From the NCBI RefSeq assembly GCF_001194135.2, contig NC_068985.1, positions 93,058,102 through 93,122,101 on the forward strand: a stretch of 64,000 nucleotides of DNA, read 5' to 3'. This document shows positions 29,501-63,896 of this stretch, piece by piece. The stretch's first letter is position 1. The number at the start of each line of letters is the position of its first letter. A program made the position numbers and the translations under genes. The DNA comes from Octopus bimaculoides. Taxonomy: Eukaryota. The notes under the pieces were generated by a model. That model had not been told where the DNA came from. It made no database searches and saw only the letters and a list, made by a program, of their open reading frames with translations.

Positions 29501-32500
29501 CTTGAAGTGTGTCTAAAATTCAAAGCAGATATGTTAATTATAAAATAGATGTATTATTAGACTTTCATGTGTTGACAATTTAATTTATTAATCAAATTAT
29601 TATTGTTCTTCTTCTTTTCCTAAGTTAATTCTTTAGCATTACTTACGTGTCTTTGAAATTATTGCTTAAACTTATGCCTGTCAGGTTCTATATCCTCCTT
29701 TTAACACTTTCTGTTATGGTATCTTTTTGTCTTTCACAGAAATGAGATAGATAAATTATTGAGTGCAAACGCTAGCTTTAGAAATTATAGTTACAGATAT
29801 TCAAACAAACAATGCGTATGTGAAGTATTTGTAGTCATCATAATAGTACTAGGCATTAAAGTGGGGTGAGTGGTTGTGCTTCTGATATTTATGGAGCCTT
29901 CTTTCACACTCGTGTATAAAGTATAAGGTGTATGACACATGCAAGCCTGATGAAATGGATGTAGAATGAAATGAATGCTATATACAGGTTTTGTGTATGT
30001 GCACACATATGTACATCTGCAATCTGCATGTCTTTGAATGTATCTCCTGTAAATAATATATTTGTTTTAGGCATAGGAGTGGCTGTGTGGTAAGTAGCTT
30101 GCTTACGAACCACATGGTTCCGGGTTCAGTCCCACTGCATGACACCTTGGGCAAGTGTCTTCTACTATAGCCTCGGGCCGACCAAAGCTTGTGAGTGGAT
30201 TTGGTAGATGGAAACTGAAAGAAGCCCGTCATATGTATGTGTGTGTGTGTGTGTGTGTGTGTTTGTCCCCCAACATCGCTTGACAACCAATGCTGGTGTG
30301 TTTACGTTCCCTGTAACTTAGTGGTTCGGCAAAAGAGACCGATAGAGTAAGTACAAGGCTTACAAAGAATAAGTCCTGGGGTTGATTTGCTCGACTAAAG
30401 GCGGTGCTCCAGCATGGCCCCACAGTCAAATGACTGAAACAAGTAAAAGAATAAAAGAGTTTAATGCTGGTCTTTTAACTGGTGAAGTCTAAGTAAAGAA
30501 TTGCAACAACAACACCATCCAACTGTAAAAAACTGTTTCAATAAGTCTTTGTCCTCTCCATCCATGCCACCATGGAAAAGCAGAAGTAAAATCAGTTACA
30601 CACACACACACACACGGAAGCACACCATGTTCATACACATGCACAAAATGCTATATTCTCAATATACTTTATGTTTGCATTATATAAAACATGTATATTC
30701 TCTAAATTTAACTTTGTATGAGGGATGTTTCATAGCCATTTATTTGTTTCATTTGCAACTGTACATTTCTGAGCTCCTTCAACATTTCTAAACTTCCCCA
30801 GTCTTATTTTCTGTGAAAAACATTTTAGATGCATTTGTTGTTATTTCATTGGGCTGTTTTTCTTTTTTTTTAGATGAATATTATAAGAATTATGTCTGTT
30901 TTTCATTTGTTATCACCTTACTCCATATTATTTTTATTTATTTACATTAGACATCAGGTTATTTTCAGTAAATCAGAAGATAATGTAGCTGTAGTGTCTG
31001 GTTAGTTTGTTGCTCAAGTATGCTATCTGTTGGTGGAAGTCTTTTGTTAAATATTATTTTTTATTTTCTAGCTTCCATGAGCAATTTTCTCCTTCTATTG
31101 GGAGTTTTATATAAATAGAGTTGTGTTGTTAACTCACGTTTCTAGTTAGTTTACTTTTCTCTTCTGTATTCTTATGTTTTATAATGGCTCCTTGTTCTAG
31201 ATGCATGGTGTGCTGACAAAAAAGTGAGGTACCCATATGAATAATGTAACTGATTATGAAGTCTAGAAATTTCATACTTGCCTATAAATCTTTAAATTAC
31301 ATTAGTCATATGAAATTTATTCAGCAGTTGGTAGATTTGTAGTTGAAGAGATTTTTAAACTTGGATTTTTTTTAAATTTTATTATTTACAATTATTTTTT
31401 TTTCTTTTGGACATAATATGACCAGTAGTTTTTGACAGAATATAATACTTACAACCTTCTGTTTGATGAGTTCCTGATAACAGCTTCATGTATTATGTAA
31501 CCAAGATGTTTTCGGTTCATGTAATACATATATGTTGGTTTGGTTTTTTACTTAGTCTCTAATTAATGTATTCAATTGGTTTCTACTTTCTGTAGAGAAT
31601 GGTCTATAATAAATTTGCTTTGTATATCTGTCACTGACTGGCATTTTTGTTTCACTCACTTAGCTTTTTCCTTTTCTTTTTTTCTTGGTTTTGTAGTTTC
31701 TCTTTGTACAATAGAATCAAAAGTGCCTTATGAGTTGGTAGTTTATTGATAATATTGTTTTTGAATTTCTCGTTTTTCATCCATGTGGGCAGCATACACA
31801 CAAACACATGCGTCTATTTGTTGGTTTTGTAGTATAAAAGCTTATGAGAGTTTGGCACCCCCATGCATCCAGAGCGTGGCAACCTTATTGCATATCTAAC
31901 ATGTGGATGTGACATAGCTTTATATGCTTGTCATCATCTTCATCATCATTTTTTTAGTGTCCCCTTTTCTATGTTTTCATGGGTCAGACAGAGCTTATTG
32001 AAGCAGACTTTTTTTTTACAGCTTGGTGCCCTTCTTATTGTCAGCCTTCACTTGGTTTCCAAGTAAGGTTCCCCATGGCCAGACATGTTTCCATAGAATA
32101 TTGGATAGGAATGGTACTGCTTGTATAACAGTAACACCCACTTATAACTATCACAGAATGTTAAGATGTTGGAGATAAAAACATAGTCACACCTGTGTGC
32201 ACACACACCCACACACAAATATATGACAAACTTTTGGATGGAAGTTCATAAACCCATTACTCTATTACTATGTACGTTTCCACATTGGAGTTAAATCAAA
32301 CACTCAATGCTCCACCCTCACAGAGCATGTACACTGAATTCAGAACAAAGAAATTCATGACCATTCTCTTTTACTTCTCTTATATTACTGATTCTACTCT
32401 CTCTTTTCCTCTTCCTATCCACACACGCCCACTTGCACTGATCTAAATACAAAGTGAATCACTACATACATCCACCCTCCCATTTTGTTTATGTATATAT

Positions 32501-42900: not shown

Positions 42901-45900
42901 GACTCCTTGTTTATCAACCAATCTTCACTCCTCAAAATTGCTTGCCTTATGTTTAAATCAGAAACAATTATTATGGGGAGCAGGAAGAATCATGACAGCA
43001 TCAGAAAAAAATTCTTTGCAGTCCTTTTTCCCATTCTTTACATTCTGCGTTAAATCCTCTCTTCTTTTATTCTTCTAATGGTGTCAGTCGTAGGATTGTG
43101 GCCATTCTGTAGCACTGCCTTAATTCATTTCCTATCAGTTATGTTGTCACTTTATGGCTGGAAGTTGGTCTATGATTGAGCTTGTAGCAGCAGATCTCTG
43201 ATTGTATCCTTGAATGGTTGGCTGGTCTGGTATTGTCATTAGGAGTTTATCCAGCTCAGCTTTGTCTTTCATCCTTTAGAGGACATTAAAGTATCAGTCA
43301 AGCACTTGGGTCAATAGTACCAAGTATCACCATCCCCTCAAAATTATTATTATTGTAAGGGAATATCATTCTCTAGTTTATAAAAAAAGTAGCCTTCAAG
43401 AAATAACTGAGCTTTACCAGATGCTCTGTAGTGTCTGAATTCACTAAAAAGATACAATACCAGTAAGATGTTAAGGCTGATTTCATTGCAGCTATTATGC
43501 AAATATTGGTTGTATGTGTAACCAAATCCTCACTCTTCTTTCGTTTTTATTTAATAAGAACACTATCTTGTTATATGATCTGAAAATAGGATCAACTAAA
43601 TGGCTTTTCAGTACCATAAATCCTATGAAGCCTGTTATCTCTTTTAATGACTCAAAGAATTTAAGCTGGTTCAGATTAGAAATGCTTGAATGTTCTTATT
43701 TTCAATCACTGCCTATTTCCAAGTAACCTAGAGTTTATTTAGTTGATCAATTTGCTTGTCAATATTGTTCAGTCAATATCTAACTTTAGTCAACATTATT
43801 TCTCACTGTCATTCTTTATTTCTTCCAGAAAATAAGAAAAGTCTTTTATTCATGTGCATGTGTCTCAAATTATTTGTTTTGAGTTAGTTGACGTATTTTT
43901 GTGTTATGTTGAATTGACTAATTATATATATATTTGTTTTTACACAGCTTCTCATTTTCTTAACCAAATGTTATCTACCAAGTTATAACATTAACTTTTC
44001 CAAAAAGTATTTCATAAAAGATTGAAGTTCTTATTTTAAGGACACATCCACAATGTACTTGTGGAGAGAAAATGCTTTAACAGTATCCATTGTAATTTCA
44101 CATTCTTTTTTTTTTTTTAAATATTTAGTGTTTATTTTACTTTATTATTTAGGTCAAAATCTCACTGATACATGTAACTGAACGTATTAGAAATATAGAC
44201 AATACACACTTTGAGAACCAATCCTTAAGCTCTCACCATTTATTGTTTCTGTTTGTCAAAATGTTATCACAATAATTATATTTTTAATGGAAAAATTAAT
44301 CACCCATATAATGGCATCTTATATTTTTCACCTTAACAAACTGCTTAAATGTGGAGATTTTTTTTAATTTTTACTTTTAATTTTTAGTAGAAAAGTGGAA
44401 CATAATATTAATCGTAAGTTCTCGCCATCTTCAACTAAATACCACCAAATAAAGATGAGTTATTCTGTCTTTATTGTAGCTGCTGTGAAATTACCTTTAG
44501 ATTCTTTGTACATATTTGCATTCTCACATATCTATTACAGTCTTCCAGTCTTGTAATTTTCAGAATAAAGTCTATTCTAATACGAGTTATTTTCTTAAAA
44601 TGGAAAATTTCTCTTACCTGTTTTTCTTGCAAATTAATGATTCAATGATATTTTGTTTTTTTTTTGTCTTTTAGAAATGCTATAAAATAGTTGCTTTTAG
44701 TTAAGCTTTTCTCTTTGTCTGAATAACTCCGATTAGAAATTTATTTAAACCCAATGAGTAATACATACATGTTCTTACATAAAGAGAAAGAGCATAGAAC
44801 TAGAATTATGTTTTGTATAATGTAAACAATATTAAATATATTCTGTGATTACTATTTATTGAAATGCTCGAAATTTTTGAAATCATTATATATTACCATT
44901 AAGAAATTGGTCTTTTCACAGACGGTAGCGATACAACAAGCCATACGAATACATTTGAGCTTTTTGGCTCAACGAAAGAAAGTCATCTTTATCCCATGTC
45001 TCCATCAGAGGATGCTCGAAGCTATGACACATATGATAAAAGTTTAGATGAATTTTCTGATGAATGCAGTAAAAACTATGAGGTATGTAGACAATTAAAA
45101 TTAACATAAAATCTCTGTTCAAATTTTTAAGAGGAATTATTTTCTTCTCCAATTCTTTGAATCTTTTGCACTTCAAAATCTAATTCAGTGATCTGGTATT
45201 ATTTATTCTGAACGTTTCTTTCTGAAATCAAGTGGTTATTTAATTTTTACCTTCTACAACAACATAAGCTAATTTTTGACATAATGACAAATGTTAAATT
45301 TAGGTCAATGGCCTTGTGGAATTCTTGTCAATGATCATGACAGATAAATAATGTTAGGTTAGTTATTCTGGGTGATAGATTGACAAATGTTAAAGTTTAG
45401 CCTCTTACATTGATGGATGCTATATATTTTGTCTCTGTATCATCCGTAGACATTTGCTGTTAAATACATTTTAGCAAGGGTTTTTTTTTCTTTTTCCTTA
45501 ATCAATGCTCTAACCAATAAGTCATACTAAAATACTCTTGGACAGCAGAATAAAATTATTCTTTTATATATTTTTTTTACTAAAACTCTGCTACTACATT
45601 TTGCTACATACTAAGATTATTTAGATTATCCAACTTTTAAGCTATTTCAGTTATGTTGTCAGAAGGCAAATCACTAAAGATGTTAAAATCCTATTATTAT
45701 ATTCAAATTTTTTTTTGTTTTTTAATATTTTCTGGAGACAGCCATATAACTTCATTTATACTTATATGCATTAGAAATGATGGCATTTTATGTATGCATG
45801 GATGTGCTTTTTTCTTCACTTGAATGATTTTCTTTTCTATCACGTAATATGCAACCTTGTGAGTTCCATTGTAGAACGTGCGTGTATATGTAAAAGAAAG

Positions 45901-48900
45901 TTTTTACTGGCTTAAATTTTTTTTAAGTATGAGTAAATATGCTGAAATCTTCACTTTTCTACAGTAAAATTGTATCACAATGGGTCTATCTTTACTTGTA
46001 ACCATTACTTGTATGTAGTAACAATAGATGTCAAATATAGAAATAGGATGGTTGACATAAAGGTTAAAAAAAATATGGCAAAAAATATTTTGTTGTCGCC
46101 TTTTCTGATTCTCTTAGAGGCATTAAAATTTTAAAATCAATTCTTTGTGTGTATTTGTATGTGATGGTTATGAATAATATTAATTTAAAAACAGATTCCC
46201 ATTTAAAATCATTAAAGTGCTATGAAATAGTGTCCAGCTATTTTCTTTTGCTGATTTTGAAATCTGTAAAAAAAAAAATTACAATATGAAACCACATGAG
46301 AAATAACCCTTGAAACTTGGAAAGCTGTGACTTTTAGATATGCTGTCTGCTTTTCTACTCAAGAAGTGTTGTTGGAGACAGAAACTGAATAATCTTAATT
46401 TGTAATTGTAATACCATGATTTAGAATTTGATTATTGAAATACTATCATACTTGGCCATATATATAGTACAGTGTCTGACAAATATGGTTCATAATAACA
46501 TTTCTTGTTTTTACATTATTTACATTTGACAGATATTTGTCCTCATCTTGTTTGTTGTTAACGCAACGTTTTGGCTGATATATCCTCCGGCATATAGCAT
46601 GGTGGTTAAGAGCACGGGCTACTAACCCCAAGATTCTGAGTCCAATCCCAGGCAGTGACCTGAATAATAATAATAATAATGATGAAAAATACCTTGAGAA
46701 TGAGAACCCAGGTTCGAAATTTTCCCAAGACACCTGATGAAGGCTGGAGGGTGTATCAACCGAAACATTGTGTTAACAACGAAAAAGATGAGGACAAATA
46801 TCTGTCAAATGTAAATAATGTAAATAATGTACATAATTCCTCATCTCTTAAATATAGAACTGTATTTCTTGTTTTTATTAAATTTTTTTTTGTTTTTTTT
46901 TTTAAAGAAGCAAATTAGAATTATGTCTCTTTTAGTTTTTGCCATTTCAGGATGAAGATATGAAGCGGGTTTTTTTACCTCCTCATGATTATTCTGATAG
47001 ACCATATACACCATGTAAACAAGATTCACCTCATGTAGAACCTAAAAGAATATATATGGACTCACCAAATCGGCAAATTGCATATTTAGATGATTCAGAC
47101 ACAAGATTACCAAATGAAGGTGAGTAAAAGGAAACTTTATCTCTCTCTCCAATTCCATTGACTAAAGAATTATTTTTGATCAACAAAGAATTAATTTTAT
47201 TACAAAACACTATCTGTCCTTCTCAAAATGTGCAGATTTAAGACAGCTTGTATTTTATTTAAGAATTTATCTAAGCAATATTTTTATAAAACTTGCAGAT
47301 AGCAGATGTTAAACCAATAGACAATTCCCAATTTTGACCTGTAGAAATGGAATATTCAATATGAGTCTGTTGTTTGATCTTACTGATCAAATGGCATAAT
47401 GACTACTCCTGGCATTCACTGAGATGGGGAAAGGAACAGATAGCCTTAGTTAAATGGCTGAAAATGTCTCAGGCAAATTGGACTTCATTGGAAAGGGAAC
47501 TTCCAGAGTAGATGAAGGCATTTGTGTTCTTTAACTTTCATTATCATATGTAATAAAATACATGTTCCTTAAATTAATTTTGAAAATAATCAAAATTTGT
47601 TGTCAATTTAGTAAGATAACTAAATGTTTGTTAATCTGATGTAACAAATTTAACCAAAGGTTCTAAGATAAAATTATGATGGAAGTCTATAATTTATATA
47701 TAAAATGGATGATTTTACATTACAGAACTAGAAACGATCTCAGGCTTTTTGGCACCAAAATGGTTAATTGTTTGGTTATTATCAATATGAATTATAAGTA
47801 AAGATTATTTGACAACATAGCATGGCAGTCTTGGTTTAGGACTGCCATGTTATGATGGCAAATAATCTTTACTCCAAAAGAATTTTTGCTGAATATCTCT
47901 CTTTGTGAGATTTACAAACAGTAATTTTCTAATGAATTATAAGGTTGAATAATCATTGGATTGACATGTCTTCAGTATTTTCAATATTAATGATGTTCCT
48001 GAAGAAACAATCAAGATGATGTTTGTAAAGAATTCTTCACTAAGATCCAAAAGTCTGTTCATGATCAAGTTAGCTTCTTCCATTTTATAACATTGTTTAT
48101 GCTAGAAATTGTACATTATTTACATTTGACAGATATTTGTCCTCATCTTATTTGTTGTTCACACAATGTTTCGGCTGATATACCCTCCAGCCTTCATCAG
48201 GTGTCTTGCAGAAATTTCAAACCGCGGTTCTCATTCCTAAAGTATTTTTTGTTGATATTATTATTCAGGTCACTGCTTGGAATCGAACTCGGAATCTTGG
48301 GGTTAGTAGCCCAAGCTCTTAACCACTATGCCATGTGCCCATATTATAATTCATGTTGATAATAATCAATCAATCAATTAACCATTTTGGTACCAAAAAG
48401 CCTGAGATCATTTCTATTTCTATTATGTACCATTTTATATTTAAATCATAGACTTCCATCATAAAAAAAAAACCTTAGGAATGAGAACCCAGGTTCAAAA
48501 TTTCCACAAGACACCTGATGAAGGCTGGAGGATATTTCAGCTGAAATCTTGTATTAACAACAAACAAGATGAGGACAAATATCTGTCAAATGTAAATAAT
48601 TCCTCATCTCTTAAATATAGAATTGTATGCTAGAAATTGTTTCAAATTTCATTCATCACGTATAGATTGAAGATAATACTCATTAAAATCTTAATTTTGT
48701 TCAAACAGAAGTCTAAAAACATCTTTACTATTGGGCTATCAGATATTTTTCCTTTTTATATTTCACTTGGCATTCCATCATTATAGATAATATTTATTTA
48801 GATTTCAAAAATGATGAACTAAAGTTGTAGAAGAATAGAGCTACAAAAGCATCCATAAAATAATCCAATAAAAATTTTTTAGTGTTAATTCAAATAACAT

Positions 48901-51900
48901 TGGAAGGGATTAAAATAAATGAGAGAAAAATGAACAAATTTATCTAAAAACCCAATATTTAGGAGCTTGGCTAATATGCAGTGACATATTCTACATTTTG
49001 AGAAATCATGATGTGTAATTTTCAGATTGAGAAATATATCATTGAGAAGTCTTAAAACATGTGTGGATTTTTTTTTACCCTCCATTGATATAATGCAATG
49101 TTTGACAGAAAGAGCAGCAATATTGAAAAATTGCAAACAGGACTCATCATTTGTGTGCAATATGACTGACTTAATATAAAGGATATTTAGAAATCAAATG
49201 AAATGTATATTTTTTTAGCGCTACAGCAGAAACTGTGGTTGGACATTAAGTGCTTAGTAAGCTGACCCCTGTCCAGAGGGTGGTAGGGTTTGGTCCTTAA
49301 TGAAGCAAATAGTTCTTCAAAAAAGTTTTAGGATAGTGTCACATTATTTACATTTGACTGATATTTGTCCTCATCTTGTTTGTTGTTAACACATTTCAGC
49401 TGATATACCCTCCAGCCTTCATCAGGTGTTTTGGGAAAATTTCGAACCTGGGTTCTCATTCCTAAGGTATTTTTTGGTGTTATTATTATTATTGTTATTA
49501 TTCAGGTCACTGCCTGAAATTGAACTCGTGGGCATATGGCATAGTGGTTAAGAGCGTGAGCTACTAACCCCAAGATTCCGAGTTCAATTCCAGGCTGTGA
49601 CCTGAATAATAATAATAATAACATCAAAAAATACCTTAGGAATGAGAACCCAGGTTCAAAATTTCCCCAAGACACCTGATGAAGGCTGGAGGGTATATCA
49701 GCCAAAATGATGTGTTAACAACAAACAAGATGAGGACAAATATCCGTCAAATGTAAATAATGTACATAATTCTTCCTCTCTTAAATATAGAACTGTAGTG
49801 TCACAACTTACAAATTTGAGGGATGGAATTGTTTGAAATTGAAGTATTATTAAATGTTACTTTAAAAAAATAATAATACTCTTGTTTTTGTTCTGCTCTC
49901 ATATACTTTCTCATTATCTAGTTTAAAGTAGGTCTCCATTTATGTTATAAATGTTGACTGGAATTTTAAATTTTACATATCTTTATGACTATTCAATTTT
50001 CTCTGATAGATTTATATATGACACCTAAAAAAAAGACAGAAACCTTTGAGCCTAATCATTATGGGGTTATTCGAGGCAAGACGCCACCAGGAAATATATA
50101 TGAAGATACAAATTGGTCTCGTCAAGAACAAAATAGTCGAATGCGAGTAAGTAATGGACTGTACAGGGGACCTTTTTCTTCTTTCAGCACCTTATTCTAA
50201 GATTATTGTTTTGTTTTTTGGGGGGTTTTTTTCCCAGATATTCATTCACTTTTTATGATTTCTTTTCATTTACTTTGACTATGAGTTTTAAAGCTACTGT
50301 GAAAGTGATAATCCTTGTGAAATATAGCGCTGCGTTTTACTGATTAATAATATATAATTATTGAATTGTAATTAAGTGTAGCTAGCTCCAAGATCTATAA
50401 CTGCCGAAAAGAAATAGTTGTATCTGCTAGAATAAAAGTTTTCTAATGTAATTTTATTACTGCTAGGTGAAATATTTTAACTGTTGTCTTTTGTGGTTTA
50501 GTACCATTTTATTACTCTGGAATATAGTCTGCTTACAAAATTTACTTTTTTATTCCAAACTTCACTTTGCTTGAATAGTTTTAGGAATCTGTTTTCTTAA
50601 TGAAATTTTAATTAGATTAAGTAATATAAGAATAAAAATAGTTGTCATTTAAATTTGAAATACAACATGATTTATAGAATACACAAACTTGAAGATGGTG
50701 TAGTTTGTTTCATTAACCTTTTTAAGTTGTTTGAAATTGATATTATTTTTCTGATATAGTCTTGTTAAAATTCTTCACTTTTAATGACTTCTGAAAACGA
50801 AAAGGATAAAAATGAGTTTCTTATACTTTTGAAGTATGGAAATGAGCCACACTATATTAGAAATGTAAATTTATATAAAAAGAATTTTTTTAAAGAATAA
50901 CCTAACGACCACTTTCATGTCAATTCCAAACACAATTTCAATTATCTATATATGAATAGTGATTTTCATTCCCCACTTTTTTTGTTTTATAAGAGCATTT
51001 TTAATTTCTTAATTGGCGACAATATCTTAACTTCTAATTTTGCTTTTTATTTTTTCTTTCTTTGTCAGGAAAATTTAATTATAATGTTGGTATTTCTGAT
51101 GGCTCATTTTCTTTCTTTCCTATGTAGTAAATGGCAGTTGTACCAGTCATTACAGCAATACATTAATTTCTATTGTTCTGTCAGTGTTGTGCCTTTACAC
51201 GTGTTTTATAAAACTCTTTCACTGAAAGGTTCTTTTTTAAGCTTCAATAGTAATTTTTAAATAACAATTAAATTTCTTAAATATATCCTAATTATACTCA
51301 AAAAGTTAGTAGGAGACCTAAGGGTAAGATAGTTATTTAGAACGAGAGCTATTTTGCAGATGGTGCTTGACATAAGCTTCTAAATTCATCTTTCCATTCA
51401 TATTAAATTGTTTCTTTTTTGGTGGTGGCGGGGTTTCACATTTAAAAGCCAGTTATAGTCTTTAATGAAGAAATAGTTGAAGCATAGAGCAAAATATTTA
51501 TTTTTATACAAATTACCTATAAAGTTGTAGTGAAGTAAAATAATATCCGTTGTGTTAAAATTGCTTTGCTATGAATATACAGTATTTTTTTTTATTCTTA
51601 TAAGAAAAGGATCTTGGTAGTTGGTGTCTGCATTAACATTAGAGATCCCAGCATTTGCATTTCTGTCAACAGATCTGCAAGATTATGTTCCTACTTTAAC
51701 TTTGGTTAAGTAGAAATAAAGTATCAATCATTTGTGCCTTACATTACTTTATTTTCTTCCTTCATTTATCATTTTACTGTTTAATAGGAGAGTATTGTAG
51801 TTCGCTTGAAGCATTGTGTATTGTTTGTAAAGAATAAAAAAATTTGAATGGTACAACAATGCACTATAATACAAAAACTGGACTATATACCTGTTGTAAT

Positions 51901-54900
51901 TTAGTTATCTATAGTCCGATGATATTTCAGAATACGATATCTTCTTCAGATATTCTTAGATGACGTCGCTGCTATAATCTGTTTTCCAATGGCTTTTCTT
52001 TTTTCGGAAGTGTCTCAGTAGTATTTAATCTTCTATACCATTTTGAGTAAGATGGTTTTTATAACCAGCTACTTATTTTTTATTGTTAATTACTTAACTA
52101 TGAAGCACTGGTGCTGGGGCCATGTAAAAAGCTCCCAGTGCACTCTGTAAAGTGTTTGACATTAACAAGGGCATCCAGCCATAGAAACCCTGCCAAAACA
52201 GAAGATGGAGCTTGGTGCAGCCCTTGGTCTTACTAGTTCCTGTCAAACCATCCAACCCATGCCAGCATGGAAAAATGGACGTTAAATGATGATGATGATG
52301 ATATTAGTGTTGAACCTATTGTTAATGTTTTTTGGCTCCAACTTATCTCTGTTCAGAAGATATTGCAGCCATGACCATCATAGCCAGTTTTGCTTTTCAA
52401 ACACTGAACTTGTAACCATAACATCCCAATATGTTCTTTTTTAAAAGAGGGATAGGGTATGATTTGCACGAGATTTAGCTGCTATTTCTTTTAAGTTGAG
52501 AATCCACATAGATAGACCCTCTCTCATTCTGGCTTGTTAAATGAGTGGATTGAGCAGAATTGTATTTTACTGACTGGTGCTCCATCATTTACAGTGACGA
52601 GTGTTCCAGTTGATCTGATCAATGGAACAGCCTGCTCGTGAAATTAATGTGGAAGTGACTGAGCACTCCACAGACAAAGTGTATGACAAGGCTGACCCTT
52701 TGAAATACAGGTACTACTTATTTTTGCCAGCTGAGTGATTTGGAGTAACATGAAATAAAGTATCATTCTGAAGGACATGACATGCCACTGAGAATTGAAC
52801 TCATCACCTTATGATCATGAACCACAAAGCCAGCACATTAACATTATAGCCATTGCTTCATCTCAACTGCACACTATCTCTGTCTTGTATGCAGCTCATT
52901 TCACTTTCTAACTTAATCCTGAAATTCATACTTGTCTCATCACTTTCCTGTTTGTGCTGGTCTTCCTTCAATCCATGTTCCTCCTGAATAAAGTTTTGAA
53001 CAGGAGTCTCTTCTAATTAGCCTGTCACTACTACAAATATCTGTTGCTGAAACTTTTACCTCTCCATGCCATCATTCCTTACCTTATTCTTACCTGTACT
53101 TTATGTAAAGGTACTTGCTTTCAGCTCTGGTTTTGATCAGTTTATTTTTAGCTAATTCTTGTAGGTGTCAGACGTATGCAGTTCTCTGACTGATTGGAAC
53201 AGATGTTTGGTGAAGTAGTTGATTAGTAACGTAGAAGTAGGATGTGATAAAACTAATTGGGGTCTGAAGGTTAATATCATGGATTTTCTCTCTCTCATAG
53301 GCAGATCAGAACACATGAAACGGTGTAAGTAGGGCAGTAGTTGCAGATTAAGACCTATTAAAGAGAAATCTCTTGAGGAGGAGAACTTTATTGATATTGC
53401 TCTCACACATTCCCCCATTAAAAACAAAGGATAGAAAAAAAAAAGAAAAAGAAATATGCCGATGAAAGGAATTAGAAGTTGCTATGCAAAAGAAGTTATT
53501 GAATTTATATCATATTTCTTATTTAAGTTTTTTAACACAGCATTTACTCCTTAAAGACTAATACAATCTCTTTGAAACTTTAACTATTGATCATTTCTGT
53601 TTAGTCTGGTATTAAATTTAAGTACTTGTACTGCTTTTGATCAAATCCGCTGACTTTTCTCACTAATTAAATTATTACTGCTCTCCTCTTTGTTTATTTT
53701 TTTTCCCACCTAACCTGAAATTACAATGGCCACCATTAATGTTGACAGCCACATGTCAAATCCATTTCAGTTCTTTTTTTTATCTTTTTTTTGTCATTGC
53801 ATTTTTTTAAAGCAGTTTTTTAAATTGCTCTTCTTTGTATGTTTTCTTGTTCGCTTTTTTTTTTTCACTCCAATTTTAATCATTTATTTTTTGTCTTCTC
53901 TGGAAAATTAACATCAATTATAGCAACAGCTTTAGAATAGATAATAGAGTGCTAAGAACATAGGTGTTGCAGAAGACTAAAATGTAAGAGTTTAAAAAAA
54001 AAATCCACAGCGTTACCAAGTAATATCTCATTTGTAAGGGTAAAAATAAAATTAATAGAATGAGATTTTCATTTTCTTGTTCGAATGAAAAATTGTTAAT
54101 ACTAGTGGATATAGTTGTTTGTGGAGCGCTTTAGTTGTAATTAATTTTCACTTTCAATGATGTTGGTAGCTTCTTTACTTTGTTTTATTTTCAAGTTTTT
54201 AGAAACATAACTATCTTTATTTCAACAAAGGTTTTTTTTTTATATAATTTTCTGTTCCTTTTGTGTATTTTATACAGATTTGTTTCATATATTTTTATGT
54301 CTAATTAATGTGGTTTCATTTTTATTCATACAGGATCTGTAATATATTGAAACAATCCTTTTAATTCCATGTGTACCAAGGCAAATGTTTTCTCCAATGA
54401 AACAAGCAAAATTTGAAAATATTAGCTAAATGTTTACATCCAGAAATAGAAAGCAACTTCTGTATATTTCCCATAACTTATTGATTCAATCCACCCTTAT
54501 CCATTTTTTACTGGCTGCTTTGATAAAATAGCTACAAGTTGTAGACGATGAGGCATTTGGTCATCTCTCTAGTTTGATTAACTTTTATATTAGTTTTTTT
54601 TTTAAATGAGGCATGATGCAGCCAGGCTGATTGCCCAGGTCAGTCTGACTACCTCTCTCCATCCCTCCTTATCATCCATTAGTGTTTTTAAGTTTTCAAC
54701 TTGGCATCCAACTTGGCAAGATGTTATATATATAATCATCTTCCATGGTCTTCCAGCCAGTGTGGTACCATAATTTGGTGTCCACAGCAACACTTTCTTC
54801 TTTACTTCTCCAACAGTGGTCAGCAAACCTCAATCTCCACAAGTCAGCTACAGAACCATTTTATTAGTACCTTTTCCTATCATTAATGTCCTTCTGTCCT

Positions 54901-57260
54901 GTCATCTTAGCACTGTTGTGCTCTTTTGTGGTTCACCTTCGAACATGAAAAAATCATGGGTCAAAGTTTAGTCTTCCTTTTCAGTTAGCAAACTTATTTT
55001 TGATAGACTGGTATCCTAATCAGAGTGGGAGGGTGTCTGTCTTTACCTCTTCCACTTGAAGCTCCAGGAACCAGAACACTGACAGAGCTTCTACATAGTT
55101 ATTCAACATACTTATCTTCCCCAGATCGCATTCTTCTCTCCTGTGAAAATAGTTCATATTCAATATTGAAGTCCTAGAAGCACTATGCCTGAAAAATTAA
55201 GGAATGGTTTTTGTCAAAGAGTTGCTCAATCAGGGCTGACTTGGAGCTGACAATAAAATCCAGGTGTAAATGCTTATCCATTGGTTTGTGGAGATCTGTG
55301 AAAGAAAATGATGACACTCTTATGAGTCATTGTAAGCATTACATCCTAGAGGACTTGAACAATATCTGTTTTACATTTAGTGTTATGAGAGATAATATGG
55401 GACAATGTATTTTTGTCTGATAATATCATAGGTAATGTCTGATAATATTATATTGGTACAGTATATTTTTATCCAAATTTAAAGCTACATATTCAAAATA
55501 ATGAAGTGGATATTAATTTTTAAAATGAAATTAAATTTCCTGTTTGAATATTAGCAATAAATATATTACCAATAGTGTTTAAGTATCAATTAATTACAGA
55601 AGTAACATCACCTGAGACACATTTTATTTTTCATCTTTTAGTTAAGATGGAAGGAAGTGCACTTCTGACTCTTTACTGGGCTTCCATGACTGATGTATGT
55701 GTTGGGGGAAAAAATTTTCAAAGTGAGGGTTTATAAGTTGCCACATGATGGTGTGAGACCATGTGACAGATTAAATCTACCACCCACAGAGACAAAAGTA
55801 TATTCCCAGCATTATACGTTATATGATGACACTTGTTATATTAGAAAAATAAATTCATTAAGCTCATACTTATATCTTTTAGGGAGGACAAACAGGGAGA
55901 TATGGTGACACACTGCCAACTCCCAAGACTACTTCATTGTTCACTTAGTTGATTTATAGAATCTATTCTACCACCACCAAGTTTTAAAATGATCATCTTT
56001 AAAGTCCTGACCTTTCTCTGTATTTTAGTTTATAAGACATTGGTTTAATTTTTCACCCATTTTCATTAGCAAAAAAAATTGAAACTGAGAAAAAAAAAAC
56101 ACAACCTAATTTTTTTTCATTTTTCCTTTTCTGCGAAAAAGGAAGAAATTTGTTGACTGCTGTATGTCAAAAAAAAAAAAAAAATGGTTAAAATGTCTTT
56201 TTTTGCAAACATTAAATCACATTGAAAATCTCTAAGTCACTTAAACTATGTCACTTTTCATTCCTTTTAGCTGTTTGAGAGAAAAATGTAATAATAAAAA
56301 TATTTTTAAAAATCACTTTCTGAAACAGTTAATAACAAACAAAATTACTTCAGTATTTCTCATCATTTTCTTTATTATTATTATAAATACTAATTGTATG
56401 CATAAAATTTTCTTCCTGAATACTACAATTAACAAGAAATTGTAACTAGGCACACAAACTGGCAAAACTTTAAAACCCTACAGTAAGATCATACAGAAAA
56501 ACAAAAAGAACCTGAATCTTAGTGATTTTTTTTTCTTCTCTCTACAATATAGATACTCATAATAGTGTTGATGATAAAATTGTTAGCAAGAACCAATATT
56601 CTGTTTCACAAATCTTTCTGTTACATATTGCCATATTGGATTCTGATTTCTTAGTTCAAAACTTATTCAGGAGAAAAAAAAAAAAATAGGATTCTTACAC
56701 TTAAGTTTCTGTGTTTTTTAATGTTTAACATGCAAAACTAAAACATACAGATAGGGTCTTCCCCACTTTTTCCCTTTATTTGAACATTAATTTGCTTCCC
56801 TGCTTTATTCTTATTCGTTTATCTTGATTTCATGGAGGAAAGCAAATTTCAATTTTATTTTTTATTTTACTTTGTTTATATGTTAATAGTATTTTGCTAT
56901 TACTATTATGAATATTATTATTATTATTATTTTGACTAGAAAACCGTAAATTTTGCATGAAACTCAGGCTCTTTATTATACGCATGTCAGTGTGCATAGG
57001 TTTCTTTCTGATGTTGTATGTCTTTGTGCCATTATTTTCAGAATGGAATGGTAGGGGACTACCTTGAACGTGCGCCCAGCCGTCCATGCAGCCGAGCCGG
57101 TAAGACACCACCCCCTCCACCAGTGCGTACCTCCAGCCGGGGGGCCACCGACTCTGCTGCCGCCGCTACTTTGTCATTAGAAAACCATGCCCCTCCATTG
57201 CCTGCACGTCTCTATGGCTCTCAGGACTTGCCTAATTATACACCTTCTCCAGGTGTGTAG
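5619..57260 (+). CDS. NPHS1: Multi-exon gene (5' part lies outside the window): nephrin/Sns/Hibris/SYG-2-like Ig-superfamily adhesion receptor (last Ig domain, FN3, TM, ~236-aa cytoplasmic tail)
   Basis: Seven AG/GT-bounded exons join in frame (phases 0-1, 1-1, 1-1, 1-0, 0-1, 1-0, 0-stop). The Ig C-terminal motif DYGKYLCKAKN is followed by SKPDPP...WQPGFNGG...YVDV, which resembles nephrin SRPDPP...WKPGFDGG...YVDV. The TM has the internal Asn (LLALNIGL) and basic stop-transfer RRKRKR typical of nephrin/Sns. Orthology is recalled similarity, not a search result. Confidence 0.8.
6536..6721 (+). CDS. Exon: FN3 domain strands A-E (SKPDPPYNIKFVNATHNSLTLTWQPGFNGGMTQSFRVRYRPKGTTNYKYVDVGPGSNVYLLT)
   Basis: Acceptor ttctttctattaactcctag, donor G|gtaagt. 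FN3 hallmarks PDPP, LTW, GFNGG, F-x-V-x-Y. 186 nt, phase 1-1. Not in the ORF track because it has no start codon. Confidence 0.95.
6776..7173 (+). mobile_element. Head-to-tail dimer of SINE 'family 2' with a single 17-bp TSD
   Basis: Two copies of ...ctgagttcaaattccgccgaggtcaactttgcc...cggggt.gataaattaagtaccag.... Flanked by attatttgttctgtgaa at 6759-6775 and 7174-7190. The core resembles the Meta/MESC SINE domain (from memory). Confidence 0.85.
7400..7746 (+). mobile_element. Two tandem short RTE-3'UTR-derived repeats with (GAT)n tails
   Basis: Motifs gggcatccagc.atagaaac and cccatgccagcatggaaagc..gttaaa.gatgatgat, shared with 59443-59600. Confidence 0.7.
13094..13565. mobile_element. hAT/Charlie-type MITE with an internal (AT)n(AC)n tract
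   Basis: Left end cagtttccaacctggggtccatggaccc, right end ggggtccatgg...ggttgggaatgactgttgggaaccactg. The termini match CAGTGGTTCCCAACC-type TIRs. Imperfect 8-bp TSD gtatagat/ctgtagat. Confidence 0.7.
13956..14117 (+). CDS. Exon: juxtamembrane stalk + transmembrane helix + basic stop-transfer (DLNPPEEHDAAPPQDSDDMPLIIILVVCIVGIFLLALNIGLIMFFIRRKRKRLE)
   Basis: Long poly-T acceptor ending tttag, donor A|gtaagt. About 26 hydrophobic residues followed by RRKRKR. 162 nt, phase 1-1. Confidence 0.95.
15651..15693. repeat. (AAT)n microsatellite
   Basis: Perfect aataataat run. Confidence 0.9.
16632..16667. repeat. (AC)n microsatellite
   Basis: Perfect acacac run. Confidence 0.9.
17930..18880 (-). mobile_element. 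Decayed RTE-clade LINE: RT C-terminal half and 3' end
   Basis: Minus strand reads WQLLYADDRVLIMESAEDVEKKF (YADD at 18809-18820), then GELIS.GSEYCESMVARAG, then GRPRKT..VVKTDLKMLH. Many stops and frameshifts. Confidence 0.85.
18893..19140 (-). mobile_element. Dispersed repeat with an RTE-like tail, abutting the RTE relic; other copies at ~1733-1960 and ~31930-32200
   Basis: Shared motifs ggatgc.cttt.ct.t.gc.aacc, catggcc.(a)gacatgtt and catttacaac in three places. Confidence 0.6.
19200..19660 (+). mobile_element. Second, oppositely oriented RTE-clade (RTE-1/BovB-like) LINE fragment
   Basis: Plus-strand peptides TKYMES, EVKEYIFL and WKVFASIKDVLKAQLNKILLANLFNSNVLPALLYVSETC resemble RTE EEVDEYVYLG..W.AF..IKDVL....ANLFNSTVLPAMLYGSETW. 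Confidence 0.7.
21250..21615 (+). mobile_element. Older, diverged SINE family 1 copy
   Basis: ggttcagtcccactg...gtggatttggtagacagaaactgaaagaagc...gatagaataagtacc. Confidence 0.75.
21640..21850 (+). repeat. Dispersed repeat ('gatttg.ctgctatttctagcagg' family); other copies near 12770-13010, 22190-22440, 35870-36070, 41905-42115, 52310-52520
   Basis: Recurrent motif gctatttctagcagg.tgag.gacca..tagag.ctcc at 6 positions. Confidence 0.6.
23394..23591 (+). mobile_element. SINE family 1, 5' half, cut by the assembly gap inside its (AT)n tract
   Basis: Same head and body as 30070. (AT)n runs into the N block. Confidence 0.85.
23592..23996. other. Assembly gap (405 N)
   Basis: Run of N bases starting inside an (AT)n microsatellite. 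Confidence 0.99.
24218..24447 (-). mobile_element. SINE family 2
   Basis: ctggtacttaatttatcgaccccgaaaggatgaaagcaaagttgacctcggtggaatttgaa...gctaacgtttctgccagctcacc. Confidence 0.85.
26560..27260 (-). mobile_element. Possible highly decayed PLE (RT/GIY-YIG) relic
   Basis: Weak minus-strand peptide resemblances: SRKHPNLK to N..HPNIKF, SFSPG, and GTTPRLLIEHV to G.T.R.L..EH+. Heavily frameshifted. Confidence 0.3.
28862..28933 (+). CDS. Candidate 72-nt cassette exon in the cytoplasmic juxtamembrane region (RHLEWYALHSSNHSGTNETIPRQR)
   Basis: ccattgtag acceptor (weak pyrimidine tract) and CGAG|gtaatt donor. Phase 1-1, length divisible by 3, open in the frame of the flanking exons. Sits in a non-repeat island of higher GC. 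Confidence 0.35.
30070..30460 (+). mobile_element. Full-length tRNA-derived SINE 'family 1' with an internal (TG)n microsatellite
   Basis: Head ggagtggctgtgtggtaag...gggttcagtccc, body gggcaagtgtcttctactatagcctcgggccgacc, tail gaaacaagtaaaaga. Near-identical copies at 23394-23591 and 62041-62414. May correspond to the described octopus OR-type SINEs (not verified). Confidence 0.85.
32800..33158 (-). mobile_element. tRNA-derived SINE 'family 3'
   Basis: Minus-strand head gtggaggtgcaatggcccagtggttagggcagc...ttgattccc. Body ccagttgat.cgatcaa.ggaacagcctgctc.tgaaattaa is shared with 52590-52865. Confidence 0.8.
33188..33397 (-). mobile_element. SINE family 2 embedded in (TA)n
   Basis: Same core as 24218, with (TA)n on both sides. 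Confidence 0.85.
34490..35280 (-). mobile_element. Decayed CR1/Jockey-group LINE 3' region
   Basis: Minus strand reads ADLLNILQW..NLVSMNMKKT, SLQKLSMTFTEDPS*, and ORF 34844..35059 ...LYKAQMIPTIEGSS, resembling LYKAQIRP.MEYCS. It ends LWNS(F)P...FKRNIN. Confidence 0.75.
39955..39990. repeat. (TA)n microsatellite
   Basis: Perfect tatata run. Similar tracts at 13174-13211, 33161-33186 and 63873-63895. Confidence 0.9.
39992..40202 (+). mobile_element. RTE-3'UTR-derived repeat directly after a (TA)n tract
   Basis: ggtggcatgtaaaaatcacccactacactctaggagtggttggcattaggaagggcatccagctgtagaaac...gttaaacgatgatgatg. Confidence 0.8.
41780..43345 (+). repeat. Cluster of about six degenerate same-strand SINE family 2 remnants
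   Basis: Recurrent ttt.catcc/cctt...gataaa..aagtacc(a/t) cores near 41870, 42430, 42670, 42860, 43060 and 43250. Confidence 0.6.
44153..44173 (+). CDS. Candidate 21-nt microexon (SQNLTDT)
   Basis: T-rich acceptor ttttactttattatttag, donor CAT|gtaact. Phase 1-1 and frame-preserving. No other support. Confidence 0.2.
44922..45082 (+). CDS. Cytoplasmic exon (NGSDTTSHTNTFELFGSTKESHLYPMSPSEDARSYDTYDKSLDEFSDECSKNYE)
   Basis: Acceptor tcttttcacag, donor GAG|gtatgt. Open in phase 1, matching the TM exon, and ends in phase 0, matching 46951. Confidence 0.85.
46500..46877 (+). mobile_element. Composite A: inverted dimer of a tRNA-head/hammerhead SINE (inverted 3' fragment 46512-46588 + full forward copy 46589-46864) with 14-bp TSD
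   Basis: Direct repeat atttcttgttttta at 46500-46513 and 46864-46877. The forward copy has a tRNA-like head (box A-like tagcatggtgg, box B-like gagtccaatcc), (AAT)n, a hammerhead-like core and a 3' tail ...ttaaatatagaactgta. Confidence 0.9.
46727..46774 (+). ncRNA. Hammerhead-like motif, sense to the host pre-mRNA (degenerate)
   Basis: aagacac-CTGATGA-a-ggctg-gagggtgtat-caacc-GAAAC-att-gtgtt, with one mismatch in stem II and GTT changed to ATT. Confidence 0.55.
46951..47119 (+). CDS. Cytoplasmic exon (DEDMKRVFLPPHDYSDRPYTPCKQDSPHVEPKRIYMDSPNRQIAYLDDSDTRLPNE)
   Basis: Acceptor tttttgccatttcag, donor G|gtgagt. Phase 0-1. Matches ORF 46939..47127. Confidence 0.88.
47560..47860. repeat. Repeat ending in a 17-bp-stem hairpin (catagcatggcagtctt-ggttt-aggactgccatgttatg)
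   Basis: Hairpin at 47816-47854. Its internal segment 47675-47800 recurs in inverted orientation at 48341-48463. Confidence 0.55.
48098..48640. mobile_element. Composite B: inverted full SINE copy 48111-48340 + ~125-bp foreign spacer + forward 3' half 48466-48627, with 15-bp TSD
   Basis: Direct repeat tatgctagaaattgt at 48098-48112 and 48626-48640. The minus-strand head reads gggcacatggcatagtggttaagagc...gagttcgattcc, with canonical Pol III boxes A and B. Confidence 0.9.
48161..48207 (-). ncRNA. Minimal type-I hammerhead-ribozyme-like motif (best-preserved copy)
   Basis: Minus strand reads aagacac-CTGATGA-a-GGCTG-gagggtatat-CAGCC-GAAAC-att-gtgt. It has the conserved core, a perfect 5-bp stem II, and stem I acac/gtgt. 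This copy has A where the family consensus has G (GAAAC-GTT), consistent with CpG decay. Confidence 0.65.
49334..49805 (+). mobile_element. Composite C: inverted arm 49341-49528 fused head-to-head to full forward copy 49530-49797, with 10-bp TSD
   Basis: Direct repeat tagtgtcaca at 49334-49343 and 49796-49805. About 190-bp near-perfect inverted arms. Same sequence family as A and B. Confidence 0.9.
49669..49716 (+). ncRNA. Hammerhead-like motif, sense to the host pre-mRNA (core mutated)
   Basis: aagacac-CTGATGA-a-ggctg-gagggtatat-cagcc-aaaat-gat-gtgtt. Stems I and II are intact, but GAAAC is mutated. Confidence 0.45.
50010..50146 (+). CDS. Cytoplasmic exon (DLYMTPKKKTETFEPNHYGVIRGKTPPGNIYEDTNWSRQEQNSRMR)
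   Basis: Acceptor ttttctctgatag, donor CGA|gtaagt. Phase 1-0. Matches ORF 49985..50200. Confidence 0.88.
52112..52302 (+). mobile_element. RTE-3'UTR-derived repeat with (GAT)n tail
   Basis: Same family motifs (gggcatccagccatagaaac...ccaacccatgccagcatggaaa..ggacgttaaatgatgatgat). Confidence 0.8.
52590..52865 (-). mobile_element. SINE family 3, diverged copy
   Basis: ccagttgatctgatcaatggaacagcctgctcgtgaaattaatgtggaagtgactgagcactccacagac matches 32835-32905. Confidence 0.7.
54600..54960 (-). mobile_element. RTE/RTEX-like LINE 3' end relic
   Basis: Minus strand reads RLRFADHCWRSKEE, then VLLWTPNYG...GRP...GCQVENLKTLMDDKEGWREVV (ORF 54602..54826), matching the typical RTE C-terminus. Confidence 0.75.
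57042..57260 (+). CDS. Proline-rich cytoplasmic exon, possibly terminal (NGMVGDYLERAPSRPCSRAGKTPPPPPVRTSSRGATDSAAAATLSLENHAPPLPARLYGSQDLPNYTPSPGV*)
   Basis: Acceptor attattttcag, phase 0. Sharp GC-rich island in an AT-rich context. Ends at TAG 57258-57260, or splices at CCAG|gtgtgt after 57252. Confidence 0.88.
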   Translation, partial: NGMVGDYLERAPSRPCSRAGKTPPPPPVRTSSRGATDSAAAATLSLENHAPPLPARLYGSQDLPNYTPSPGV

Positions 57261-60078: not shown

Positions 60079-62040
60079 TGTTAATCAGTTTCATGATTTT
60101 GTGATTTAACTTTGTGTCATATGTTTCCATCGTTATTTGCATTCAGATGTGATAGGTTATTCTAATACATTGTTATTGATAATTTAATCCGCGATTTGCA
60201 ACAGAAACTCGGAAAATCTTCACAGTTTTGTCAGTTTACCTGTTATTACCTGATTTGGCTTTTTTTAATAAGCTGAATGCTGTGTTATTTTTGTAGTTTT
60301 TTTGTTCTACCTAGACCAGAATAATTGTGCTTTGGGGGGGGTTATATATAATGAACAGTTATAACCTAATCATCAGAGAGCTAAACCATTAGTGAATTGA
60401 ATTATTCCCTACTAGTTTAAGATACATAGTATTATTCTTTGATAGTATATAAATACAATAATGAATTTTATATATATATATATATATTCGGAGAATTTTA
60501 TTGCTATTATATATACAAGGATATTTATTTCTAAAGTAATTTTCTCTTGAAGTATTTAGTGAGTTAGCTTTCACATTCCCTGCCCCAAGCGGCAGTCCAG
60601 GAGTCAAGTAAGCCCTTGCTATGCTTCTGTTTTTGTTGTGGTGGTTCTTGTTTTTGTTGTTGCTGCAACTATAGAGTTTAATCTAGACCCTGCCCCCTAG
60701 TACTTACTAATAACTGGATTGGTGTCCAAAAATATTTTTTGACTAAGTTATTTTTTTTTAAGTGAGACCTATCACAAGTTAGTTTAATGAAATTATTGCT
60801 TCAGTGATTCCTTACACCTCACAAAAAAGGGGGTCAGAATTCATGAAGAAATCACTCTTATTTAGCTGCAGCAACAACAATCAGTTCTCCTAAGATTCCC
60901 TGATGCTTATTTTGTGTGTACCTGTATCTGTGTGTGTAAATATGTGTTTCTCCACCTTTTTTTTTTTTTTACCCATCCTATTTATTACATTCTGGCTGCA
61001 ATTAAGATATTTCAGTTGATACTTAATGTAAATTTGAAATTGTTTTTTTGAAATTCAATTAAAATTTGATATGAGCCATTTTAAAGCTTTCGTTATCTGC
61101 AGCCAGTTGTATAAACTATATACATGGTTAGGTTCATTCTCCTCCTATTACTGTTTTGCTTAATTAATACTTGGGTGCTGTTATTTGTTTTTAATTTAAA
61201 TTGCTATTGGAAGTAGCTTTTTTGTTTTCTTTTTGTTCCCCATTTTATTTAATATGGTTTTCTTTGTTTGTTCTGCTTACCTTATAGTAATTCTCTCATC
61301 TTTGCAGATCTGTGATTCCGTAATCTGTTGTCATTTTTTTGTTTAATCCCAACTTCCCTTCCCCAACCCCTTCACTTTATGTTCTTAAACTGTTGTTAAA
61401 TAATTGTTTTCTTCAATTCTCTCTCTCTCTCTCTCTCTCACTTTAAATAATGCCAAACTATTGTTTATATTAGCTTGCTTCCAGCTTTCCCATTGTTCCC
61501 TTGTTAACAAATTCTTGTCAGCTGATCACAATTAATTTACATGTGCATTCATGCTTCTTTATTCTTCAATTCGTTATGTTGTTTTCTCATTAATGATAGT
61601 GAGAGCTATTATCATATGGTAAAAGTGACTATATTTTTACTGTAGTTTCCATTAACAAGTGAAACTATGAAAAAATATATGACCTTATATGCATACAATC
61701 ATGCATATGTATTATAAATACATTGCACACACATATGTATATATATATATATATATAATTATATATATATAAATCTTCATTGAAGCCATGTGTCATTTCA
61801 TGTTTCTGCATGTGATTACTTCTTTAGATTCACATTCAATATATAAGATAAAAACCAAGCATGCCAGCAAAAAGTCCATACACATCCTGTTAGCTGAACA
61901 AGGCCCCAGATTGTTGACCCTTAGCAAACAGTGCCTTTCAGCAAAAAAAATAAATAAATGAAAACCTGACTACAAAGGAAAAACTTCCAGATTACAATAA
62001 AAGTAATCCATAAAATAATTTAAAAATAAATATAAAACTA

Positions 62041-62414
62041 GGCATAGGAGTGGCTGTGTGGTAAGTAGCTTGCTTACCAACTATATGGTTTTGGGTTTAG
62101 TCCCACTGCGTGACACCTTGGGCAAGTGTCCTCTACTATAGCCTCGGGCCGACCAAAGCCTTGTGAGTGGATTTGGTAGATGGAAACTGAAAGAAGCCCG
62201 TTGTATATATATGTATATTTGTGTGTCAGTGTTTGTCCCCCCAACATCGCTTGACAACCGATGCTGGTGTGTTTACATCCCCTTTAAATTAGCGACCGAT
62301 AAAATAAGTACTAGGCTTACAAAGAATAAGTCCTGGGGTAGATTTGCTCAACTAAAGGTGGTGCTCCAGCATGGCCACAGTCAAATAACTGAAACAAGTA
62401 AAACAGTGAAGAGT
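62041..62414 (+). mobile_element. Full-length SINE family 1
   Basis: Colinear with 30070-30460. Confidence 0.85.
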
Positions 62415-62479
62415 ATATGAAATAACAATAAATTAATATGAAGTGGGAGGTTGTTAGATAACACAGTGTATTCCAAGTC

Positions 62480-63687: not shown

Positions 63688-63896
63688 ATCTTTTACTTGT
63701 TTCAGTCATTTGACTGTGGCCATGCTGGAGCACCGCCTTTAGTTGGGCAAATCGACCCCAGGACTTATTCTATTGGTCTCTTTTGCCGAACCGCTAAGTT
63801 ACGGGGACGTAAACACACCAGCATCGATTGTCAAGCCGATGTTGGGGGGACAAACACAAACACACACACACGTATATATATATATATATATATATA
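63688..63896 (-). mobile_element. SINE family 1, 3' half
   Basis: Reverse complement of the 30240-30450 segment. A similar fragment lies at 3133-3228. Confidence 0.8.

Follow-up and report, generated by a model that had tools for sequence, protein, structure and literature searches.

Head-to-head paired copies of a tRNA-headed SINE in Octopus bimaculoides: probable integration by a Penelope-type mechanism

We analysed a stretch of 64,000 nucleotides of the Octopus bimaculoides genome (assembly GCF_001194135.2, contig NC_068985.1, positions 93,058,102 to 93,122,101 of the forward strand), here called the window, in which positions are counted from the first nucleotide. Three composites of one short interspersed element (SINE) family with a unit of about 270 nt, denoted C1, C2 and C3, lie between positions 46500 and 49805. 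Every composite consists of two head-to-head arms within its own exact target-site duplication (TSD), of 14 bp in C1, 15 bp in C2 and 10 bp in C3. The composites are probably integrations of a tRNA-headed, non-autonomous retrotransposon of the type known from Penelope-like elements (PLEs), with reverse transcription primed from two nicks. The composite layout is the known PLE signature, present in the literature since at least 2013 (PMC3846280; PMC8557442), and overturns nothing. What is new, and fits the data, is the use of the PLE machinery by a tRNA-headed SINE in octopus and the probably templated filler of 121 nt in C2.

Structure of the composites

In each composite one arm begins at an internal site of the element, ...AATAATGT, and the partner arm extends by a further tail of about 34 nt (Table 1). 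A blastn search of the 64 kb retrieved the six arms as the only copies of the family; other SINE-like families of the same window are dispersed as monomers of either orientation. The tail TCCTCATCTCTTAAATATAGAACTGTA has three occurrences in the window, in the right arms only. The pre-tail motif GTCAAATGTAAATAATGT occurs six times, and its three occurrences on the minus strand stand directly against the left TSDs. The common start of the left inverted arm, claimed in the initial annotation of this region, holds in all three composites. Across C1-C3 the outer ends are fixed and the inner ends are variable.

The arm lengths given in that annotation stand for C1 (78 nt plus a full copy) and C3 (187 nt plus a full copy). 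C2, described there as a full copy plus a 3' half, has 2 nt and a segment of 121 nt between the two. The tail, put at about 25-30 nt, is indeed extra on the right arms, but its length is not uniform: the tail ACATAATTCCTCATCTCTTAAATATAGAACTGTA has 34 nt in C3 and in the consensus, 43 nt in C1 owing to a 9-nt duplication, and 27 nt in C2 owing to a 9-nt deletion. The duplication in C1 (AAATAATGT) and the deletion in C2 (GTACATAAT) fall in the region of the internal start site (46804-46840, 48585-48605 and 49746-49770 in the three composites), which suggests slippage on AATAAT repeats at the initiation site.

The arms of the window copies differ from each other by 5-13%, the two arms of C3 being the most similar pair overall (94.5%). 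The divergence from the consensus is 4-5% for the C3 arms and 6-7% for the arms of C1 and C2.

Table 1. Positions of the parts of the three composites and of other repeats in the window
Feature	Positions	Strand	Remarks
C1 left TSD, ATTTCTTGTTTTTA	46500-46513		exact 14-nt match to 46864-46877
C1 inverted arm	46514-46591	-	78 nt, tail-less, 5'-truncated, consensus ~155-241; outer end ...AATAATG(TA), 2 nt common with TSD
C1 forward copy, full-length	46589-46864	+	3-nt GGC overlap with inverted arm at inner junction
C1 forward copy, A box	46595-46605	+	
C1 forward copy, B box	46638-46649	+	
C1 forward copy, (AAT)6	46663-46680	+	
C1 forward copy, hammerhead-like motif	46728-46774	+	
C1 forward copy, tail	46822-46864	+	
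C1 right TSD	46864-46877		exact 14-nt repeat
C2 left TSD, TATGCTAGAAATTGT	48098-48112		exact 15-nt match to 48626-48640
C2 inverted arm	48113-48341	-	full-length to SINE 5' end TGGGCA, tail-less; hammerhead-like motif 48160-48206
C2 untemplated 2 nt	48342-48343		between inverted arm and filler
C2 central filler	48344-48464	+	121 nt, non-SINE; inverted copy of 47674-47797; meets right arm in A run
C2 forward arm (3' part)	48465-48627	+	5'-truncated at A-rich stretch, consensus ~97; tail 48601-48627
C2 right TSD	48626-48640		exact 15-nt repeat
C3 left TSD, TAGTGTCACA	49334-49343		exact match to 49796-49805
C3 inverted arm	49342-49528	-	187 nt, tail-less, cut off within tRNA-like head, consensus ~50-241; hammerhead-like motif 49388-49431
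C3 forward copy, full-length	49529-49797	+	hammerhead-like motif 49670-49716; tail 49764-49797
C3 right TSD	49796-49805		exact 10-nt repeat
Likely donor of C2 filler	47674-47797	+	sole other filler copy in window
Copies of ~390-nt SINE	3111-3229, 8388-8571, 21261-21536, 23395-23566, 30068-30463, 62039-62432, 63689-63886		

Target-site duplications and the empty site

The three TSDs were confirmed as exact repeats of the lengths given earlier. The chance of an exact flanking repeat of at least 10 nt at such junctions is 2.5e-4 per site, computed for this window with a tolerance of 3 nt allowed at every junction. The lengths given for the TSDs are maxima, as 1-3 nt at each outer end belong equally to the duplication and to the element. 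Where an outer end has no tail, the primer's 3' end has 2-3 nt in common with AAUAAUGUACA, and the start varies in position by about 3 nt; where it has a tail, the overlap of element and TSD is 1-2 nt (TA). At the inner junction, the arms of C1 overlap by 3 nt (GGC), those of C3 are joined blunt and those of C2 are separated by the filler.

One TSD pair encloses both arms in each composite; there is no internal TSD and none around a single arm. The empty site of C3 was found in a related octopus species (Logan contigs L011-L013), where window position 49341 is joined directly to 49797 with one CAGTGTCATA, in flanks that differ from the window by 10.5-14.5% substitutions. As both arms are absent and a single 10-mer is kept, the 10-mer of C3 is a true target-site duplication. 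The divergence of the C3 arms from the consensus (4-5%, against 6-7% for C1 and C2) fits an insertion of C3 after the species split. The claim of the initial annotation that each composite is a single integration event is thus supported by the single TSD pair around both arms and by the C3 site empty of both, the latter being the check on orthologous sites that had been proposed. For C1 and C2, a six-frame translation search for the empty sites with concatenated flanks gave no match, and exact look-ups of three junction-spanning open reading frames (ORFs) of the window and of P0003 retrieved no record. Private variants common to both arms of a composite, a sign of one template, were uninformative in C1 and C2; the C3 arms alone are clearly closer to each other than to the other arms.

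One alternative is sequential insertion, with a first copy arriving with its TSD and a second copy later homing into the very end of the first. The three insertion sites lie within 2834 bp of the 64-kb window (P ~0.006), which suggests local targeting, and a PLE endonuclease has been reported to cut its own pseudo-long terminal repeat (pLTR) or tail region (PMC11167929). However, a single TSD pair surrounds both arms in every composite and none surrounds one arm, the C3 empty site contains neither arm, the C3 arms are the most similar pair, as expected for equal age, and the same design is seen at all five readable loci (see below). Sequential insertion is therefore improbable.

The inverted repeats with TSDs are superficially similar to miniature inverted-repeat transposable elements (MITEs). 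An origin outside retrotransposition, be it a foldback or MITE-type DNA transposon, the copying of one master composite, an inverted duplication after insertion or an assembly artefact, is nevertheless extremely improbable. The TSDs of a MITE or foldback element would be of fixed length, whereas here they vary (10, 14 and 15 bp), and the tail makes the termini non-inverted, leaving one terminus unique. Copies of a master composite were rejected, since every inner junction differs. As for the assembly, one gap of 405 N is present elsewhere in the window (near 23.6-24.0 kb). However, the differences of 5-13% between the arms argue against collapsed reads, the boundaries of the empty site agree exactly with the TSD, and related composites were assembled identically from independent runs.

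The SINE and its hammerhead-like module

The consensus of about 270 nt consists of a tRNA-like head, (AAT)n, a 3' module, a stretch of about 45 nt that is nearly invariant in all six arms, and the tail. Boxes A (TGGCATAGTGG) and B (GAGTTC(G/A)ATTCC) are present in the head. ARAGORN folds it into a cloverleaf at a relaxed threshold only and not by default, and neither the region, the whole window nor the related loci had a match to a tRNA family in Rfam. Two full-length arms, the left one of C2 and the right one of C3, terminate at the same TGGGCA, which argues for an RNA with a defined 5' end. The 3' end of the SINE is ...AAATATAGAACTGTA with no A run; it is neither a 3' end derived from a long interspersed element (LINE) nor a poly(A) or microsatellite tail.

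The CpG-restored consensus of the 3' module is GACAC-CUGAUGA-A-GGCUG-N10-CAGCC-GAA-ACGU-U/GUGUU. All its features fit the descriptor of the minimal hammerhead of PLEs, taken from PMC4209133: CUGAUGA, an extra A before helix II, G10.1-C11.1, GAAA, the palindromic ACGU and a helix I of 5 bp. The differences between copies at CCGAAACG are all products of CpG decay. The copies at hand are decayed genomic relics from a few close families. By its sequence, the module fits a Penelope-type minimal hammerhead motif, that is, a putative ribozyme.

Related loci

A profile-free search with a SINE-derived ORF retrieved 140 representative ORFs carrying the module. At the codon level, PEEG (90 times) and PDEG (11) correspond to CUGA(A/U)GA, where the free position N7 alone varies; PKRC (57), PKHC (35), PKCC (6) and LK(H/R)C (17) correspond to CCGAAACGUU and its CpG-decay forms. 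The variation across these ORFs is limited to N7 and CpG sites. In at least ten ORFs the antisense module is followed by the sense module, always in that order. DNA pattern scans of metagenome and viral collections gave no match; one hit in a bacterial metagenome-assembled genome (L014) is a bare 21-mer and was discarded as a chance match.

The other loci considered (L015-L021) are not orthologous to the window. L019/L020, from the same related octopus species as L011-L013 and chosen blind, is an inverted dimer with a 10-bp TSD, ATAAATAGTA, in which an inverted arm of 77 nt with a tail is followed by a filler of 18 nt and a forward copy ending tail-less at AATAATATACA. L016/L017, also from that species, has two head-to-head arms, both tailed, and represents older copies. 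Both loci were assembled identically from two independent sequencing runs. L015 and L021 begin inside the SINE and are uninformative on the 5' side. All five octopus loci with a readable 5' side are inverted pairs. Five of six loci have one tail per composite, a proportion not distinct from two independent choices (binomial P ~0.11).

The contig L018 from ENA contains a module that is about 80% identical to that of octopus over 82 nt. Here a 13-bp TSD surrounds an inverted truncated unit with a tail, a tandem unit with a tail and a tandem unit without a tail; judged from the sequence, this layout is the textbook PLE arrangement. The related group of ENA ORFs includes tandem units of about 137 nt.

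These loci limit one rule of the initial annotation, by which the inverted arm is tail-less and the forward arm tailed. Which arm is called inverted is a matter of arbitrary labelling, and the arm without a tail is full-length in C2 and L019. Nor is the placement of the tail general, as it is found on the short arm in L019, on both arms in L016 and on the inverted arm in L018.

Two observations concern proteins. The N-terminal residues GEGWRVYQPKCCVNNKQDEDKYPSK of P0004, the O. bimaculoides dystrobrevin beta isoform X1, are a translation of the SINE 3' module, and therefore a copy has been exonised in an annotated gene model. P0007, P0039 and about 30 other ORFs from ENA contigs start with MANGIRTGDPRGFNKG...; its back-translation, made from the protein only, resembles the antisense of a tRNA 3' half including CCA, just upstream of a sense hammerhead module.

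Proposed priming from two nicks

The integration probably proceeds as follows. Firstly, an endonuclease would nick both target strands about 10-15 bp apart. Secondly, each 3'-OH would prime reverse transcription (RT) of SINE RNA: one RT start would lie internally, at ...AAUAAUGUACA, where microhomology to the primer amounts to 2-3 nt, and the other at or close to the RNA's 3' end, so that the latter arm would include the tail. Finally, the two cDNAs would grow towards each other and be joined where they meet, with 0-3 nt of microhomology or with filler. Under this scheme the outer ends should be fixed and the inner ends variable, both arms should include the same 3' sequence, and one TSD pair should enclose them, all as observed.

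In published work, both strands of the target were cut and extended by a purified PLE protein, which began RT at two internal sites with the tail between them (PMC11167929). We infer the two-nick priming itself from these in vitro data on another PLE; that two RNA molecules serve as templates, and which autonomous element is the partner, are inferred too. An inverted 5'-truncated copy beside a main copy within one enclosing TSD pair, as in PLE insertions, is present in C1-C3, L019 and L018. The tail of 30-40 nt that PLEs can have at one end has its counterpart here: C1-C3 and L019 carry it on a single arm, L016 on both. Priming from both nicks, suggested in the initial annotation, agrees with the anatomy of the composites, with the polarity of the C2 filler and with the in vitro data (PMC11167929), and that suggestion is essentially the published PLE mechanism. 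The attribution to PLEs made there fits as well, given the module that follows the hammerhead descriptor and its homology to repeats with the canonical PLE arrangement.

Several points weigh against this interpretation. The 64-kb window contains no reverse transcriptase or GIY-YIG ORF. The in vitro demonstration of priming on both strands concerns a lizard PLE, not an octopus element (PMC11167929). The empty site was found for one composite out of three. The Rfam hammerhead models gave no match even at E<=10 in the region, the whole window or the related loci, and because of this the hammerhead assignment is at the motif level, by a hand-applied descriptor and the CpG-restored consensus. L016/L017, with tails on both arms, has no recognisable TSD. 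The sample of loci is small (five readable 5' sides) and, having been reached partly via ORFs, may favour some architectures.

Another possibility is a single priming followed by snap-back, so that the end of one cDNA turns back and serves as primer for its own copying. For the rotifer Penelope, palindromes at inverted junctions have led to the proposal of self-priming on an antisense template (PMC3846280), and the C2 filler could itself be a product of top-strand snap-back. However, the junctions are asymmetric: the inner end of one arm lies at consensus position ~155, ~50 or 1, and that of its partner at position 1 or ~97. Moreover, the inverted arm contains the element's 3' part, with its outer end at the fixed RT start beside the TSD, which the fold-back of a cDNA end would not yield. 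This makes snap-back decidedly improbable as the origin of the composites.

If the composites are two-nick integrations, one may ask whether pairing is obligatory. The SINE would then always integrate as an inverted pair, with a dimeric PLE ribonucleoprotein holding two SINE RNAs paired via the palindromic helix III (AACGUU) and with symmetric target-primed reverse transcription from both nicks. We regard this as unlikely. If it were true, each insertion would make a ready-made long double-stranded RNA hairpin in host introns. Octopus is known for heavy adenosine-to-inosine RNA editing.

With arms, junctions and TSDs within about 350-550 nt, the composites would be compact natural records of PLE integration. 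The copies show start-site microhomology, 5' truncation, repair of the inner junction and one probably templated filler, all of which can be counted genome-wide and compared with the in vitro results of 2024.

The filler of C2

The filler is an inverted copy of a segment located 301 bp upstream of the C2 insertion site (Table 1). The two differ by 10 substitutions in 117 aligned nt (8.5%) and 2 indels, a divergence no greater than that between the C2 arms. The filler is placed at the inner end of the full-length left arm, after the 2 extra nt. Its polarity is as expected if the 3' end of the top strand copied the SINE RNA to its end and then a plus-sense template. This template could be the host pre-mRNA, the host gene being on the plus strand, or the top strand itself by snap-back. 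The filler is thus probably a templated one, made during integration. Within this comparison, which covers the window only, it is also possible that the filler is a dispersed repeat. A palindrome at 47797-47873, with arms of 34 nt and a loop of 9 nt, directly adjoins the presumed donor.

Comparison with known elements

The SINE resembles endonuclease-positive PLEs (Penelope/Poseidon, Neptune, Naiad; Pen2a_Av of Adineta vaga and PAc of Anolis) in several respects. Firstly, a head-to-head inverted 5'-truncated copy stands beside the main copy. Secondly, only one end has a tail of 30-40 nt, by about which length the inverted repeat falls short. Finally, the TSDs are short and variable in length, and the repeated module includes a minimal hammerhead, putative in the SINE, upstream of the RT starts. 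In Pen2a of A. vaga the inverted pLTR is 37 bp shorter, with a 31-bp tail on one repeat and a 9-bp TSD, and the same study gives TSDs of 8-10 bp (PMC3846280). An inverted copy with 5' truncation and a tail of 30-40 bp at one end are typical of Naiad and other PLEs (PMC8557442). Unlike PLEs, the SINE has no RT/GIY-YIG ORF, its whole unit is about 270 nt, and it has a tRNA-like head with A and B boxes. Also unlike PLEs, its three copies in the window lack a direct partial tandem (pLTR).

Metazoan non-LTR retrozymes and short non-autonomous PLE derivatives are, like the SINE, non-coding; they contain a minimal hammerhead of type I, for which the SINE has a putative counterpart, and probably rely on the enzymes of PLEs. 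Retrozymes form head-to-tail tandem arrays (preprint 10.64898/2026.07.22.740005) and circular RNAs, whereas the octopus copies are dispersed and non-tandem, have a tRNA-like head and form inverted pairs; no head-to-tail tandem of hammerhead copies is present among those of the window. The nearest precedent for the combination of polymerase III and hammerhead is Sm-alpha of schistosomes (PMC6765202). It is short and has a polymerase-III-type promoter and a hammerhead, but this hammerhead is canonical and recognised by Rfam, and the element is largely tandem. The architecture of an inverted pair plus tail was not found reported for Sm-alpha in the literature examined.

In the twin priming of L1, the segments come from one RNA and do not overlap. 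As proposed for the SINE, a second nick primes a second cDNA and the inversion lies within one TSD. Unlike in L1, and as stated in the initial annotation, the SINE arms overlap, the same 3' 78-190 nt being present in both. Since both arms hold the same 3' sequence, two templates, or one used twice, are needed. The hammerhead-mediated RNA dimer put forward in the initial annotation would be one conceivable source of two templates.

The tRNA-derived octopus SINEs OK, OR1 and OR2 were reportedly described by Ohshima and Okada in 1994. These families and the 'unclassified SINE' families of O. vulgaris are tRNA-derived, as the tRNA-like head suggests for the present SINE, and octopus-specific, a likeness by description only. 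To our knowledge, the standard SINE classification (RepeatMasker/Dfam) has no class for a SINE-PLE pairing, and such a pairing was not described in the literature that we searched. SINEs make up 11.6% of the O. vulgaris genome, in whose recent repeat annotation 893 'unclassified SINE' families stand beside active Penelope elements with no link stated between them (PMC13282606); nor was an octopus SINE-PLE link found elsewhere in that literature. The composites indicate that a part of this 'unclassified' octopus SINE pool may depend on PLEs rather than on LINEs.

Genomic context

The composites are intronic. The host gene lies on the plus strand, with exons at 44918-45084, 46936-47121 and 49995-50155, seen in spliced Logan transcripts (L001-L010) of a more distant species; two exons, one immunoglobulin-like and one proline-rich, are located near 5679-5912 and near 57018-57260, respectively. 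The start of the exon at 46936 lies 59 nt downstream of the end of C1. The tailed arm is on the sense strand of the host gene in all three composites. The intronic RNA of C1 (46514-46864) is predicted to fold into a hairpin of -140.8 kcal/mol (z -12.9), and that of C3 (49342-49797) into one of -292.6 kcal/mol (z -37). A single insertion would thus create an intronic hairpin of 78-187 bp, a plausible substrate for RNA editing or small-RNA pathways.

The window also contains a different tRNA-derived SINE of about 390 nt with an internal (TG/TA)n, present as seven monomer copies in both orientations (Table 1). Contig L011 starts inside a copy of this SINE that is absent from the window near 48870. 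Conversely, about 310 nt at 51780-52090 of the window are absent from the related species (compared with L011 2435-2463).

The palindromic hexamer AAATTT occurs 2-6 nt downstream of the right TSD in all three composites (46878-46890, 48641-48652 and 49806-49820; contexts TTAAATTT, TTCAAATTT and ACTTACAAATTT). The naive chance of this recurrence is about 2e-6, or about 1e-3 if the post hoc search is allowed for, and the hexamer may reflect a target preference.

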